From Trichosphaerium sp. ATCC 40318 (lineage: Eukaryota > Protista > Tubulinea): a DNA stretch of 64,000 nt. Position numbers and translations under genes: made by a program. A model generated the notes under the pieces. The model worked only from the letters and a program-made list of their open reading frames with translations. It was not told the origin of the DNA and did not search any database. This document shows, piece by piece, positions 7,126-50,768 of the stretch (its first letter is position 1; each line of letters opens with the position of its first letter). Location of the stretch: positions 62,001-126,000 of the forward strand of contig JALMLS010000056.1 of assembly GCA_038496445.1 (NCBI GenBank). Direction: 5' to 3'.

Positions 7126-8517
7126 ATGTTCAGACCTTTCGCCCGTAGTACACAAATATACCAGGTTACGCGCTCTGATGCTTCCATACACGCACGGAAG
7201 TGGCGTTTCGAGGTGAAGGGGAAAAAAAGCGTTAAGGGTATACCACGTGCCGTGGCCAGCGTGGTAGTACGCGACCGCCCAGGTAGGCTTGTTATAAATA
7301 ATAGGATGAATTAAAGATCTGTAGCGTTTTTTTCGACCACGTGCTTCGCCCGCGCACCCCACGCACTTGTTAGAACAGCTTGGCCAGATGGGACACCCAA
7401 GTCACAACTATACACGCTGGATGGAGTAAACGATGGAGATTGCAAGCACTACCACGAGAATGGTAATCTGCGTTCTACTTTAACGTACAAGAATGGAGCA
7501 AAGGTTGGAGAATATGTACACTATTTTCCTGATGAAAAAAAGGAGGTAGTTTGTAACTACGCCAACGGTACGAGGAACTTTTATACCCAAAGAAAGAGAA
7601 GATACAAATGTTCGTTTAGGACGGAAAGCAGGAGAGTATACGCAATATCACCCAAACGGACAGATGTCTGTGTATTGTGTATATGTAAACGGGAGAATAG
7701 AAGGCCTGCATAAGCAATGGTACTAGCCCTTGTAGAAATGTTTGCATAATCTGAGCTTGTTTTAGGAACTCTGGCGGCATGATATTGGCACTTACCTTGT
7801 TTAAGCACGGTTTAAAGGAAGGAGAATCCACTGAATATCATAACAATGGGCAACTCAAGCAACAGACATTCTACAAGAACGATCTGAAGGAGGGTGAATC
7901 AAAGAAATGGTGCAACAGTAGTTTCGCTAATTTTGGTTCTCGCTTTATTTTTTATTGTCACCACATGTTTATCACGTGATTTTTCTAAATTAAGACGTTC
8001 TTTCATTAGGTATCCCAATGGACAGCTCAAAAGTATTCATTTCTTTAGAGAAGGTAAAGAAGAAGGAGAAGAAAAGTCATGGCATTCTAATGGTCAATTG
8101 CGTCATCAAGGACAAAATAAAGATGGAAGAGATGAAGGAGAGTTTAAAAGTTGGTTTTCAAATGGTTCTTTACGTGTTGTAAGGAACTTCAAGGATGGTA
8201 AAGAGCATGGCGACGAGATTGAGTACTACAAAAATGGACAAATTAAAAAGAAAAATACAAACAATCTCGGTAAGGAAGTAGGAGAAACACTTGAATATTA
8301 TGACGATGGAGTATTGAAGAGCAAAATAAACCTTGTAGACGGTTTAAGAGAAGGTCAATTTGAGACTTTTCATCCTAATGGTAAGATTAAATCTAAAGGT
8401 GTCTACTTGGATGGTAGATTAGATGGAGATTACAGAACATGGGACGATAAGGGTATCACAACTTTATCTCGCATTTACCGAAGAGGAGAAATTCGCGAAA
8501 CAAAGAAACAACTCTAG
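7126..8517 (+). CDS. Long MORN-variant (MORN2) repeat protein with possible mitochondrial presequence
   Basis: 4 introns; more than a dozen G-x3-(Y/W)-x2-NG-x-L repeats; Arg-rich N-terminus MFRPFARSTQ. Confidence 0.8.
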
Positions 8518-8925: not shown

Positions 8926-10020
8926 TCAGACACGTCGTTGATATGGTTGGTGTCGTCGATTTCGTTTTGTGGTCTTGCGTTTTGCTTTACGGCATATTAA
9001 AGGTGATGACGCTTTAGATTGCCATTGCTCAATTAGAGCAGCTACAAGAACTTTGTAGATGAAGATGAACTGTCCGACTGTTTGAACCATCGCCCAACTT
9101 CTTTGTTCTCTGAGCTTCTTTATGATATCTGGAACGTTTACGACGCGATTGATCGAGTTTACAAAACAAGAAGGAAGTTCCTTTGTAGGTTTAGATAAAT
9201 CGACTGTTTCTTCCTTTGTAGTTGTTTTATCTTCCTCGCTTCTTGTGTACTTCGCTAGCTTGCTTATAGCGATAGCAGAGCTAATAAAAGTGCCAGCTCT
9301 GCCGACACCCGCGGAGCAGTGTGTAATAACGGGTCCGTTTAGCTTATTTAGTTTTGCGGCTTCTCTGTATAGTTTTGTGAGGTTGTAGAGCGAAACGATC
9401 GAATGCGCGTCAGACGGCGTTCCAAAATCAGGCCAACCCATAAATTGTAGTTGTATTACTTGTCGCGTTTCGTCGGTTACGCTGTGAGTTAGTGTGAAGT
9501 TTCGTGTGATTACTTCTTTTGAGACTGATTGGCTAAGTAACGTAATTTGAATGTCTCCCCATACGCACGTCATCCCCAAGCGATTTGGCCAATACATGTC
9601 GCCCTTTTTATAGCCGTTTTCAAAAAGTTTTAAAAGTGTCACTATAACGCCTGAACGCTGTTCCCATACCATTTGCCAAAAGTCATTAAATGTTGAAGGT
9701 AAAGGGCACTGTGTTGCGATCCATTCGTGCTCGTTCGTTTCTTTTTCTGCGTCGCCGCAGTAACTAGCGTTTATGTAATTGTTTGTTCTTGTTCGCCACG
9801 TTTGATTTAATTTCACTCTACTTCCTTCGTTTGGTAATATATTAGAATAGCGGTTCTTGTTATGGTTCGCTGGAGCTGAAGCAGTTGGATACGTTTGTTT
9901 TATAGCTGTATAACTTGTTGGTTTATCCTTTGTTTCTTCTAGATCGTTGTATTGACTTTCTAGCTCTTCTATGTTCAAGTGCTGCGTGAATTGGAGCATT
10001 TTGTTTTTATGTAATTTCAT
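8926..10020 (-). CDS. Classical (tyrosine-specific) protein tyrosine phosphatase, intronless
   Basis: KNRYSNI, YINAS, IATQCP, DFWQMVWEQ, WPDFG, HCSAGVGRAG and MVQT motifs all intact. Confidence 0.95.
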   Translation of the reverse strand: MKLHKNKMLQFTQHLNIEELESQYNDLEETKDKPTSYTAIKQTYPTASAPANHNKNRYSNILPNEGSRVKLNQTWRTRTNNYINASYCGDAEKETNEHEWIATQCPLPSTFNDFWQMVWEQRSGVIVTLLKLFENGYKKGDMYWPNRLGMTCVWGDIQITLLSQSVSKEVITRNFTLTHSVTDETRQVIQLQFMGWPDFGTPSDAHSIVSLYNLTKLYREAAKLNKLNGPVITHCSAGVGRAGTFISSAIAISKLAKYTRSEEDKTTTKEETVDLSKPTKELPSCFVNSINRVVNVPDIIKKLREQRSWAMVQTVGQFIFIYKVLVAALIEQWQSKASSPLICRKAKRKTTKRNRRHQPYQRRV

Positions 10021-15422: not shown

Positions 15423-16801
15423 CTAAACATGCTCTGACCAAGGAAAGGATTTATCACTATTGTCCGTGTGTGCCCAATAATATCCACTCAATTCTCCAGT
15501 ATCTTTGTAATAACCTTTGTATAATAGGAGCCCTTCTGAGTTCCAAAACTCATCTGACTTTTCGCCAGTAAGTTGTCTTAAAAACTTGATCTGACCATTT
15601 TTATACCACTTCTTTTGAAAGTCCTCTGTATAATGCTTTGCGATTTGTCCATCTTCATACCATTCTTTTATAAGGTTAGTATCATATTCGCGTTTAATTT
15701 TCCCATCTTTATACCATTCCTTAAGCATGTGTCCTTTTCTGTAATCTCTTATTTGACCAAGTTCAAAATAATTTTCAATCTCAACAGCATTGCCAAGATT
15801 ATAAATCACCCTTTTCTTGATTTGGCCACTCCCCTCATACATACATCTCCATTCGCCTTCCTTCAAACCTTTGCGCATTTTACCCTCCACACTTAAAGTA
15901 CCACTTGCATACCACTCAGAGTATGGACCATCTTTGATACCATCTTTGTAGAACTGTCGAACCTTTATACCATTATTGCAACTCTTGCGTGCGTTCTCAA
16001 TAGTGAATTCCATTTGGCCGTCAAATTCACCATGTTTGTATGTCATTAGCCGCCAATGTCCGTTTTGGTGGTACTCAGTGTGTGGCCCATGAAGCCTTCC
16101 TTGATTATCATAATATTTTTTTTGAAAATAAAACTGTGGAGTATTGAACCGAGTTCGTCTCCATCCCTTCCAATGTCCAATTTGTTTTAATTCCACTGAA
16201 TAATGTGTCATAATTGCTGCTTTTCTTGAGAGAACATGCCTAAACATAATTAGAAACAGCAACAAAATGCAATCAAGTACCACTTGGAGAAGGTTGTACG
16301 TTCCATCTCGCAGATATACTGTTGTATTTCAGGTGGTAATGACAACAACAAGGAAGTGTCATAGTCTAGAATAGCTGTATATTTATCTTTTAAGATGGCA
16401 GCAGCCTCTCGTCTTAAGTTTGCTAGGTATGACACCCAAGTTTTTCCTTTTGTCTTTAAGCTAGGACGGGATGCGCCAACACCTTTCTTTAGTGGTGCAC
16501 TTATTACTACGCTATCAGAAGGTGCGTCGTGAGGTTGGGGTATAAAAGTGAACTGCTCCTCTTTAAGCTGTTTAGGTTTGAAAGTAAATGATGGTTCAGC
16601 AGCTTGAGTTGGCGCTTGTGGTTTGGCTGAGAATACAAAAAGCGGTTGATCTGCTTCGGCTTTTGCATTTGATAAAGCAATACTGGGTTTGAAAATAAAT
16701 GCGCTACCTTGAGTGGTATAAATACGAAGGAGAATAGAGAAGTAGAAACTTTAAAGAATACCTTTGCTATTACTATCACTGGGCTTTGTAGAAGTTTGCA
16801 T
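15423..16801 (-). CDS. F-box-like + MORN2-repeat protein with N-terminal FxF-motif low-complexity region; paralog of 5567-6165
   Basis: Two introns join MQTSTKPSDSNSKG/SAFIFKP...LLLSLPPEIQQYICEMERTTFSKW/HVLSRK to the MORN2 repeats of ORF 15423-16283. Confidence 0.75.
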
Positions 16802-47936: not shown

Positions 47937-48621
47937 AATAACCTCGTTTCTAAATAGAATAAAAATTCCTTAAAAGAAAACACAAGTAGCACGTGAGTTT
48001 TATTTTGTTCTAATTCTCACTAAAAGTATTGAATACACTTATGGTGTAACAGATTAGTACTGTGTAGCCTTCGCGAGGCTATATTAAACCTTTCTATTGT
48101 GACTTTTGTAGCACAAACGGAAACGTTGTAAACTACGGTACTACTGGTCAGTATTGAAATGCTGTAATACATCATTGTTGGTATGATTGAGAATATATTT
48201 CAAACTGTTGTTTCTTTCCCCTAGTAAATAATCCTTTTTTGTCATGCCCAGTTTGTCCGAAAATCATTTTTCTGGCTTGAACCCCTCGCCGAAAAGTGGA
48301 AACACTCGCGGTGGAAGTTAGCGGCTTCTTTGCTCGGCGTAACGCCAAATACTCAAAATACTTTTAAATTGGTATCAGGCTAGCTATTTCCAACTCTGGC
48401 GTCTCTTGTTTGTTCCCAGTAAATACCTTTGACTACCTTTTATTATGCAGTTAGAAGTTGCTTGTCCTAGAGCAAAGTGATGTTAAGCAATATGTAAGGT
48501 GTTCCGTTCACTACTAAACAGCACAAGAAGAAGAAGTTATTTTACGATATACTGAACCAATACATGTACGGACAACTAGGTACGTTCTTTGAAAAGTAAA
48601 GTGACTACATAGAATTTTGTT

Positions 48622-50577
48622 TTATTGTACATTATTAAAGTCTTGCTGGCTATGATTATGCCAAACAGCACGCATTTCTAGCTCATACACGGGTAAGGCT
48701 TGTGCGTGTTTATATAAAAAATACTCCATCGAGTCCTGAGTTGTGTTGCTATTATATTCTGGAGTAGGATCCATATTTAACATTTTCTAAGAACATCAGC
48801 GCTCCTGCTTATGAAAAAAAACAAAGAACTTTTTTTGTCTTTGAAAAGCGAATTTTGGTTGAAGAGTGTGTTCTGTTGTATGCTTTGTACTCTCGTACCT
48901 TTTTTACAATGTGTGTTCTTCCTGTTAACACTTTAAACATTACTACCTTGGCCGTATCGCCTACTTTCAAAGGTGTTTTTCTTCCTCTTGTACAACAATA
49001 TTTTAAGCAATAATCAACGTATCGTGATACATAAATACCCTTTGTGTTGTTTCCAAATCGACCTTCGGGAATAATATAGTTAGTACGTATAAAAAAATAT
49101 CACGTGATCATTCGTAAAGTAGGTAAACTCAAAAGGCCCACAACAAACAGCTGCAACGATTTACGACAACTAGGCAAGTGAAACCCAAACCAAACAAAGA
49201 AGACAATGGCTTTTTTCAAACGGAAAAAAACGATTTAAAATAGCTTTTACCTGCTTCCGTTGATGTACTAGGATTAGAACGGTGGCCATAAGGAAGTAGG
49301 CCCTGTCTAATGGGGTTTTGTTAGTACAAGTTGGATACTATGCAGTTAATCTAGTACCTATAGATACCCTCCAAGTTCGAAGGATGTGTTCCATGAAACC
49401 CAACGGATTCTTTTGTTTGATCTTTTAACTTTTGCTTCATAGCCTCAAAAGAGGCACTACACGGTTCGTTTGAGCATTCTACTATAACATAGAGTATGGA
49501 TATTTACTACGTACGCTAGTTTTGGGTTTGAAACACGACGTGCACTCACAAGAAGGAAAGTAATAGGTCTTGGTTGTACAGGAGGGTTATAGATATCAAT
49601 TTGATTATTCGTGTGAGAAATAACTTTACTGTAAAGCTTCCTATACTCTCTAGAATCTGCTGGCACTACACAAAAAAAATTAGACGGAGATTTCTTGTGC
49701 ACGTGATTACCGTGACATAAGAACGAAGCTGTTGCTCGATACTTGGAATCCACTACAGCGTTAAAGTTAGAGAAAGAAAACCGTTATGATAACCAGAAAA
49801 AAAAAAGGTTAAAAAAACGCTTCATTGCGAACCTCGTTTTAGCTCTAGTATGTACGCTGATATTTTCTTTGTTGATCTGCGTGGTATATTTAATATGTTC
49901 ACCATACGAGCTTTGTCTAATTCAAGAAGATCCGCTCCACTAGAACAGAAAAGTAAGTTACGAAAAGCACGTGTGAAGTTTTTTTTAGCTTTGTTTGAAA
50001 ATAAAAAAATAAATGTAGTGTACGTTATATTGTGATCTTCCATGATGTAAGAAAGCTCCGGATCTATCATATGCATTGCATAAATAACTTGATCTACAGT
50101 CCAATCTTCAGGAGACTCCGCAGAAATTGTACCAATCCTCTGAAGCTTGTTTTTGACAATTCTGTACTCGTCAGCGTGTGTAACGAGTTTGTGTTTAGAT
50201 TGAAACCATGTCGCCATACATTCAGGCGTATCAGGTATTGTTAATTTACCTTCGCCTATAGGTGTATCTGATACCCATTCCCCAAGCCACTGCGCGCCAT
50301 CTGCAAATGTCCAAGCACCAACTCCATGTCGTTTATCATCCATAAAAGTGCCAAAATATGAAGTACCATTTGCGCACGTGAGAGTGCCCATACCATTCAT
50401 TTTATCGTCTTGGTACTCTCCACTATATTTCTTGCCATCAGGCCATATACATTCTCCTTTACCATGTCTTTTATAGCCTAGGCACTCACCAATGTATTTA
50501 ACACCATCAGGTGTAGTATACTCCACGTGTTTCTTTTTTTTACGACTTTTAGAGCCTACACCATTCTTATTACCCAT
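48622..50577 (-). CDS. MORN-repeat + SAM + PARP-family ADP-ribosyltransferase catalytic domain protein
   Basis: Manual splicing through 7 GT-AG introns keeps frame: MGNK..., MORN repeats, SAM (EDWTVDQV...SGADLLEL), DSREY...RRVSNPKL/AASFE...VGFHGT...G/RFGNNTKGIYVSRYVDYCLKY...VMFKVLTGR...MEYFLYKHAQALPVYELE, stop 48622-48624. Confidence 0.85.
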
Positions 50578-50768
50578 GTTATCCTAATGTTATTATAATG
50601 AGGTTATTTTGATCTGTTTTGAAGCAAGATGCACCTTCCTTAAAAAACGTAAGTCCGAGTTCAATAGAAATTCTTTATTTGGCCAATACGACGCGCGTTG
50701 AGTGGGTTTATAGCGCTACCACACCTTTAATTCACTAAACAAAGGTGCCATTGACGGTATATCGCTAT

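Follow-up and report, generated by a model that had tools for sequence, protein, structure and literature searches.

A single expressed gene of Trichosphaerium encoding MORN repeats, a probable SAM domain, and a PARP-type ADP-ribosyltransferase domain

Gene structure and transcript evidence

In the present study, we analyzed a 64,000-nucleotide stretch of DNA from Trichosphaerium sp. ATCC 40318 (assembly GCA_038496445.1, contig JALMLS010000056.1, positions 62,001 to 126,000 of the forward strand; hereafter the window) and focused on one gene on its minus strand. The predicted product carries four MORN repeats, a probable SAM domain, and an ADP-ribosyltransferase (ART) domain of the PARP type. 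The minus-strand segment from 50577 to 48622 is the exact coding span from start to stop codon, with eight exons forming an open frame of 445 amino acids (aa). All seven introns have GT-AG borders and are 45–188 nucleotides (nt) long. The G+C content of the region is about 37%, and the DNA is eukaryotic.

Ten public RNA or cDNA runs matched the stretch, six runs carried 0.31–0.47 of the sampled words, and four (X1–X4) were compared. It was observed that seven of the seven predicted joints were present at the exact positions in public RNA/cDNA contigs, CT..AC on the plus strand being GT..AG on the minus strand. The MORN, SAM, and ART exons lay together within single contigs, namely X1 record 1 (1245 nt) and X3 record 7 (2129 nt), and contigs bearing all junctions within one molecule came from three independent studies. 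The X3–X6 libraries are probably full-length cDNA, since a template-switch-oligo tail was found on one X4 contig. In addition, the JGI/MMETSP transcript L001 (1409 nt) matched the exons at 100% identity, extended from 50623 to 48606, and included the 5′ and 3′ untranslated regions (UTRs), and the transcript-derived open reading frame (ORF) P0171 (MMETSP/JGI, unnamed, 445 aa) was identical to the spliced model letter for letter. P0171 shares one 90% protein cluster with P0001 and P0172. The 5′ UTR contained no upstream ATG and in-frame stops lay just upstream of the start codon; therefore, the MGN start is sound. Exon 8 alone matched the C-termini of ART-family relatives with E-values down to 5e-8, and thus gave independent support for the spliced 3′ end.

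The initial annotation, made from the DNA letters, had proposed a hidden MORN-SAM-PARP gene at 48622–50577 and splice junctions across its small exons, and the transcripts bore out both: there is one mRNA, and individual contigs cover the MORN exon together with ART exons. It had also taken the 251-aa ORF at 50577–49822 for a MORN plus SAM protein. This ORF carries an in-frame intron of 84 nt (50023–49940) inside the probable SAM domain, and the raw ORF looked continuous because this intron is in frame and without a stop. Further downstream, fragments bearing PARP-like motifs lie in the other two frames. The MMETSP/JGI data already hold the protein, unnamed and with MORN and PARP flagged; what is new here is the full architecture and the family placement, not the sequence. 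As a protist gene it is well supported and otherwise ordinary. Table 1 collects the coordinates of all features.

The contigs of X2, a related strain, showed six differences from the window, one intronic and five exonic. All five exonic differences were synonymous, and two of them fell in the ART exons. The MORN and ART exons appear to be under purifying selection, for which the synonymous-only count from X2 is small but as expected. Two further transcript products retained introns. P0001 was identical through exon 7 and kept intron 7, giving a 420-aa product that ends before E412, and the X1 contig that keeps the same intron was the deepest-covered one in that run. P0172 kept intron 5 and ended after 319 aa, just behind the FHGT exon. 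These isoforms would encode a MORN-SAM protein with a truncated ART domain, and they are either regulatory or merely unspliced RNA.

Two minor observations concern the exon sequences. A strong-looking GTGAGT donor after ...ITFLL, paired with the acceptor TATAG, was considered and rejected: it is unused, its frame breaks, and the RNA confirmed the GTACGT donor at 49514 and the acceptor at 49457, so that exon 4 continues past ITFLL to ...RRVSNPKLA. Within the codons of the KKKK patch, a run of eight A at 50533 had one extra base in an X1 contig and none in the MMETSP ORFs, which presumably share their 2015 data set with X1. Runs of this type are slippage-prone, and the extra base is probably a homopolymer assembly error.

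Table 1. Features of the MORN-SAM-ART gene in the window
Feature	Position	Strand	Basis or remark
Transcription unit, ~1.4-kb mRNA	48606..50623	-	5′ end near 50623, poly(A) site near 48606; L001 alignment
Exon 1: start codon, MGNKNG and basic patch, four MORN repeats, helical linker, first half of SAM	50024..50577	-	Spliced model and RNA contigs
Residues 1–17, MGNKNGVGSKSRKKKKH: N-myristoylation-type motif, then polybasic patch	50527..50577	-	Read from sequence
Four 23-residue MORN repeats, starting at residues 28, 51, 74, 97	50221..50496	-	Pfam, regex period, AlphaFold2, Foldseek
Probable SAM domain, residues ~150–232, five-helix bundle directly before ART, exons 1–3	49718..50130	-	ESM Atlas structure search, PDB phmmer
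Intron 1, 84 nt, in frame, stop-free, inside SAM domain	49940..50023	-	Joint 49939/50024 in X1, X3, X4
Exon 2: second half of SAM	49833..49939	-	Spliced model and RNA contigs
Exon 3: end of SAM helix 5 and linker	49711..49752	-	Spliced model and RNA contigs
Exon 4: N-terminal helical part of ART and first strand (...ITFLLVSARRVSNPKLA)	49515..49665	-	Joints 49665/49711, 49456/49515
Exon 5: FHGT motif, H306 at 49395-49393	49358..49456	-	Spliced model and RNA contigs
Intron 5	49307..49357	-	Retained in P0172
Exon 6: family-specific loop GLLPYGHRSNPSTSTEA	49251..49306	-	Spliced model, RNA contigs, family alignment
Exon 7: GRFG..KGIYVSRYVDYCLKY, Y347 at 49033-49031, Y354 at 49012-49010, then VMFKVLTG	48899..49062	-	Spliced model and RNA contigs
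Intron 7	48787..48898	-	Retained in P0001 and X1 contig
Exon 8: catalytic-Glu strand MEYFLY, E412 at 48726-48724, last strands, stop	48622..48786	-	Joint 48786/48899 in X2, X3, X4
AATAAA	48626-48621	-	Overlaps stop codon

Domains of the encoded protein

The N-myristoylation pattern of the PROSITE type requires Gly2 with a permissive residue at position 6. Gly2 and the small residue at position 6 of the present protein fit this pattern as a motif match, and a basic cluster follows. The MORN array was recognized by Pfam at 1.1e-17 in three significant stretches. In the AlphaFold2 (AF2) model, for which the input alignment held ART relatives and MORN pieces, residues 16–113 formed a beta-hairpin array with a predicted local distance difference test (pLDDT) score above 90, and Foldseek superposed this part on the MORN1 crystal structures 6t68, 6t69, and 6t4d with a root-mean-square deviation of 1.0–1.5 Å. 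Elsewhere in the databases, MORN repeats were found fused to TIR, to a caspase-like peptidase, to an ART of the R-S-E type (PF01129), and to an AAA ATPase (P0187, P0188, P0199, P0200, P0203; mostly metagenomic). By these fusions, MORN arrays recur before effector-type enzymes.

The segment between the MORN array and the ART domain was assigned as a probable SAM domain by lines of evidence, from sequence and from structure, that agreed with each other. The Pfam scores were below threshold (SAM_PNT, E 0.046, 14.2 bits against a cut-off of 24; SAM_2, E 0.17). When residues ~150–232 were compared with the PDB by phmmer, six of the seven matches listed were SAM domains, led by Scm (1pk1, E 0.014) and PHC3 (0.065). 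The ESM Atlas model of residues 150–229 matched only SAM-bearing families (Scm, SCMH1, SCML, PHC3, and SAM-only proteins), with template modeling (TM) scores, normalized by query, of 0.78–0.84 over 71–80 residues against the SAM models of Scm, SCMH1, and PHC. The best matches of this segment in both sequence and structure are thus the Scm/polyhomeotic (PHC) SAM domains, but every sequence score stays below the significance thresholds. The helices predicted by AF2 (161–171, 173–181, 186–190, 194–201, and 208 onward) fitted the five-helix SAM pattern; the pLDDT was 53–66 for residues 135–232, where the alignment held no relatives. As in tankyrase, the conserved beginning of the ART domain follows the SAM-type segment directly, and the chain 8aly_A of the tankyrase-2 SAM-PARP filament aligned over 283 columns in Foldseek. 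Taken together, a SAM domain is probable here.

The ART domain was recognized by the Pfam profile of the PARP catalytic domain (PF00644), which scored 41.2 bits for the whole protein and 43.5 bits for residues 233–445 at a cut-off of 26.7. The profile of the TASOR pseudo-PARP domain, DUF3715 (PF12509), passed marginally, with 28.8 against 28.5 bits for the whole protein and 30.5 bits for the domain. When single exons were submitted to Pfam, only MORN and a weak DUF3715 match were returned, the pieces being too short; a phmmer search of the PDB with the single ART sequence gave nothing relevant, and a family profile was needed. The AF2 model predicted an ART fold with a pLDDT above 90 for residues 269–440, and the Foldseek matches of this part were, in order, the TASOR pseudo-PARP 6tl1, PARP4, PARP10, PARP1, and tankyrase. 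The residues H306 (in HGT), Y347, Y354, and E412 were all in place.

These results agreed with most of what the initial annotation had read from the sequence. The quoted motifs FHGT, GRFG..KGIY.S.YVDYCLKY, VMFKVLTG, and MEYFLY are present, the PARP H-Y-E triad exists and is joined by a second Tyr, and the C-terminal part is predicted to form the complete ART fold. A profile search had been proposed for PARP, SAM, and MORN: PF00644 and MORN were found above threshold, but SAM was below its Pfam threshold. Mono-ADP-ribose is the product of some H-Y-E enzymes, PARP3 and PARP4 among them; for this reason, H-Y-E by itself does not mean poly-ADP-ribosylation, and the present protein, if active, may make either mono- or poly-ADP-ribose.

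Family placement and comparison with TASOR and tankyrase

An exhaustive HMMER search with the ART part recovered 164 cluster representatives at E ≤ 1e-3, of which 88 reached 1e-10 or better. The relatives were 30–46% identical to the ART domain, 46% being the maximum among matches covering most of the domain. The named taxa were diplonemids (Diplonema, Sulcionema, Artemidia), the kinetoplastid Neobodo, the euglenid Petalomonas, Amoebozoa (Mastigamoeba, Thecamoeba), and a dinoflagellate transcriptome. The alignment of 61 sequences displayed the motifs FHGT, GLLRxGHPLNPSxxTDxGxFG, GVYVSRYxDYTLKYS, MFxxLPG, and PTxGYDSHSSPxxLEWYLFDExQxCPxY. H-Y-Y-E was complete in 56 of the 61 aligned members and the Glu was present in all 61. 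The present protein has a homologous ART domain with the same H-Y-Y-E and the same loop (GLLRxGHPLNPS..TDxGxFG), but it is a long-branch outlier of the family; its nearest relative in the maximum-likelihood tree was the Thecamoeba protein P0032, weakly paired (92/88).

When the family profile was compared with the PDB, TASOR 6tl1 gave the best score (61 bits, 7e-16), followed by PARP12 (40 bits, 2e-9), ZAP/PARP13, PARP14, PARP15, and PARP10 (31–37 bits), and tankyrase (29 bits, 3e-6). In the alignment with PARP12, the H-Y-Y columns paired with HGT, GSY, and the second Tyr of PARP12, and the Glu column paired with its H-Y-I non-Glu residue. PARP12, PARP10, PARP14, and PARP15 have H-Y-I or H-Y-L and are strict mono-ARTs; their domains lack the catalytic Glu, whereas the present protein keeps it. 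The alignment with TASOR paired the GVY[VL]SRY segment, the PL..G....V.FK..G segment, and DPTP...H.S. Moreover, DUF3715 was matched by 30 of 80 family members at E ≤ 1e-3, and the matches among the AlphaFold Database (AFDB) clusters included TASOR-b, TASOR-like, TEX15, and DUF3715 proteins. These results suggested that the ART domain is a long-branch member of a protist family specifically related to the DUF3715/TASOR pseudo-PARP, with the NAD+-site residues kept, namely HGT, the Tyr of G-x-Y-V-S, the second Tyr, and the catalytic Glu.

The DUF3715 (RDTS) pseudo-PARP of TASOR and TEX15 (PDB 6tl1; PMC7532188, PMC10578480) was thus the best solved match of the family profile and the top match in Foldseek. 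TASOR has L-Y-Q without HGT and TEX15 has L-Y-S, so that the NAD+ site is lost in both (PMC7955679, Table 1); in contrast, H-Y-Y-E is kept in the protist family and in the present protein. TASOR is nuclear and carries SPOC and DomI after the ART domain, whereas the present protein has MORN and SAM before it and nothing after it. Judged by its intact catalytic residues and the absence of the SPOC/DomI context, the protein is not a TASOR-type pseudo-PARP.

Compared with tankyrase 1/2, which have the order ANK-SAM-PARP (PMC9712121, PMC4980433, PMC9688111), the present protein carries MORN repeats in place of ankyrin repeats, and Pfam found only MORN and no ankyrin repeats in it. The catalytic domain belongs to a different lineage by the profile scores given above, the SAM domain is nearest to Scm/PHC rather than to that of tankyrase, and the N-terminal acylation-type motif has no counterpart in tankyrase. 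Tankyrases have been reported only from animals and some choanoflagellates, and a SAM beside the catalytic domain is regarded as unique to them within the PARP family (PMC9688111); the host studied here is a protist outside the reported range. Non-animal convergent "tankyrase-like" proteins have been described with ankyrin repeats and WGR, not SAM, and with a PARP1-type catalytic domain (bioRxiv 10.64898/2026.07.25.740670). The protein is not a tankyrase: it lacks ankyrin repeats, and its catalytic domain is of another lineage. The initial annotation had called it a convergent tankyrase analogue. The order of repeats, SAM, and ART upheld this comparison, but the catalytic domain is not of the tankyrase clade; the shared order reflects convergence through independent shuffling of domains, not homology.

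The N-terminal partners in the family were diverse and included ANK-SAP, ANK-WWE-SAP, FHA-SAP, SPRY, kelch, FG-GAP, cadherin-like, PAN, EF-hand, SH3, kinase, Sel1/TPR, and fn3 modules. For ankyrin repeats in the relatives, a phmmer probe with a consensus repeat served as a lead and was then confirmed by Pfam. The combinations ANK-SAP-ART, ANK-WWE-SAP-ART, and FHA-SAP-ART belong to diplonemids, kinetoplastids, and euglenids, and most family members carry chromatin- or DNA-type modules (SAP, FHA, WWE). Elsewhere in the family, MORN was found only in the Mastigamoeba kinase-MORN-ART protein P0137, and MORN together with SAM in none of the ~165 other family representatives. In a word-based search for homologs, the SAM-ART part recovered nothing but the protein itself, and the N-terminal ORF recovered only unrelated MORN proteins; the family-profile search returned no further MORN-SAM-ART protein. 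In agreement with the expectation that such an architecture had not been described, MORN-SAM-ART was not found in the protein databases or literature searched. The protein is a member of the PARP superfamily, from a protist family nearest to DUF3715, with a domain combination not seen elsewhere in these sources.

Two other proteins touch on this question. P0046 (792 aa, from a Logan contig) carries Sel1/TPR repeats and an ART domain that belongs to the present family, and it was the only other member with a weak SAM signal (SAM_1, E 0.017; ANKS3 SAM, E 0.04) before the ART domain. BLASTP of the SAM region against the putative SAM of P0046 found no similarity, which leaves a common origin of the two SAM-ART fusions unsupported; apparently, P0046 is a second possible repeat-SAM-ART design that was independently acquired. 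The AFDB entry L8H9V5 (363 aa, PARP-catalytic-domain-containing) aligned structurally to residues 119–427, covering the SAM-like region and the ART domain, and may be another SAM-ART protein.

Possible function, alternative explanations, and neighboring genes

The architecture and expression of the gene are firmly established. On balance, the best explanation of the data as a whole is a single expressed gene whose product joins a myristoylation-type and basic N-terminus, four MORN repeats, a probable SAM domain, and a PARP-type ART domain that would work together as follows. The intact H-Y-Y-E makes it reasonably likely that the protein is an active NAD+-dependent ADP-ribosyltransferase. More tentatively, the acyl/basic N-terminus, perhaps together with the MORN array, might place the protein at a membrane or cortical site; here, the motif suggests that the N-terminus would tether the protein to the membrane, and the MORN array would act as a module for binding partners or for dimerization. 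With low confidence, we propose that the SAM domain may self-associate and so raise the local concentration of the ART domain, or activate it, for auto-modification or modification of substrates. The proposal is drawn from analogy with tankyrase (PMC4980433, PMC9712121), where SAM polymerization is the activation switch, and from the resemblance to the polymerizing Scm/Ph SAM domains. Transfer of the tankyrase mechanism is speculative, because the activating PARP-PARP head contacts have been described as conserved among tankyrases (PMC9712121).

Several points weigh against this reading. As stated above, the SAM domain scored below the Pfam thresholds; in addition, AF2 modeled the segment poorly from its single sequence (pLDDT 60), and the Foldseek matches of this model to the SAM domains of Scm, PHC3, and Ph were not significant, with E-values of at least 0.5. 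The N-terminal motif was read from this one sequence, no ortholog being available for comparison. TbMORN1 did not bind to membranes or vesicles (PMC7725318); by this analogy a role of the MORN repeats as membrane binders seems doubtful, and a module for protein interaction or dimerization is the safer reading of the array. The ART domain sits on a long branch in the maximum-likelihood tree (1.7 against a median of 0.46) and is the second most divergent of the 61 aligned ART-domain sequences. It keeps 28 of the 37 highly conserved family columns, the family median being 97%. The His of YDSHSS (position 405), invariant in the other 60 of 60 sequences, is Asn here, and eight other conserved positions are also replaced; for this reason, activity or substrate may have shifted or decayed. 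Finally, the intron-retaining isoforms that cut short the ART domain occur in the transcriptome.

The divergence could also mean that the ART domain is a pseudo-enzyme and serves as a binding module, like those of TASOR, TEX15, and PARP13, in which case the PARP-like head would be non-catalytic and the whole protein a MORN-SAM scaffold. Among solved structures, the inactive TASOR pseudo-PARP is indeed the nearest by sequence profile, nine of the 37 conserved family positions are lost on a long branch, His405 with its invariance in all other members among them, and some transcripts lack the catalytic Glu strand. However, the H306-G-T motif, Y347, Y354, and E412 are kept where TASOR has L-Y-Q (PMC7955679, Table 1), none of the known NAD+ contacts is among the lost positions, and five of five exonic differences in X2 are synonymous, two of them in ART exons; a pseudo-enzyme is unlikely. 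Another explanation is an NAD+-consuming effector of conflict or immunity, in which a trigger sensed by the MORN repeats would lead to SAM oligomerization and turn on an ART domain that modifies or depletes its target, by a logic like that of SARM1 (ARM-SAM-TIR). Such a role would suit the fusions of MORN repeats to other effector-type domains (TIR, caspase-like peptidase, R-S-E ART, AAA) and the varied sensor-like N-termini of the ART family (ANK, kelch, FG-GAP, Sel1, SPRY, kinases). We consider it improbable: only synonymous variation and no rapid diversification was seen between the window and strain X2, paralogs were absent from the window, neither trigger nor partner is known, and the MORN-effector fusions come from unrelated, mostly metagenomic proteins.

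That the gene is a true tankyrase ortholog in which the ankyrin repeats were replaced by MORN repeats is very hard to maintain. The family profile prefers TASOR and PARP12 over tankyrase, PARP12 and PARP10 superpose equally well, the SAM resembles Scm/PHC and not tankyrase SAM, and the reported distribution of tankyrases (PMC9688111) does not extend to this host. The mechanical ORF list, which ends at 49822, would also agree with an artefact in which adjacent MORN-SAM and ART genes, or untranscribed ART exons, had been joined on paper only. This explanation was refuted by the contigs of three independent studies that hold all junctions in one molecule and by the full-length transcript with both UTRs.

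The reading of a single expressed gene with a probably active ART domain can be extended to a bolder form, which we put forward as conceivable though unlikely in its entirety. In this form, the protist would have independently rebuilt the tankyrase design on another PARP lineage, as an acyl-anchored, MORN-targeted ART switched on by SAM self-assembly at a membrane or cortical site, and its family would be the still-active sister of the TASOR/TEX15 pseudo-PARP. If true, the ART family would show what form the enzymatic ancestor of the HUSH silencing domain had. A SAM-ART fusion that arose a second time, independently and in a different PARP lineage, would put to the test whether non-DNA-dependent ARTs are generally activated by polymerization. 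The family is widespread in Euglenozoa and Amoebozoa, keeps H-Y-Y-E, and is the closest sequence relative of the dead TASOR/TEX15 domain; it offers a concrete set of candidate active relatives for tracing the origin of the "RDTS" domain of the HUSH and piRNA pathways.

Some minor observations were made on the surroundings of the gene. One cDNA contig that reads on into exon 1 of the MORN gene carries a plus-strand GT..AG joint from 50648 to 50745 (window 50649–50744). By this joint, the neighboring gene, arranged head-to-head (ORF from 50745, plus strand), seems to have an upstream 5′ exon antisense over the 5′ end of the MORN gene. In another contig, a template-switch-oligo tail at 50666 marked a second, downstream start of this plus-strand gene. 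MORN_2 variant repeats were detected in two ORFs of the window, at 7894–8517 on the plus strand (4.5e-24) and, weakly, at 15423–16283 on the minus strand (5e-05). In addition, the ORF at 8926–10020 on the minus strand encodes a classical protein tyrosine phosphatase of 364 aa (1e-63).

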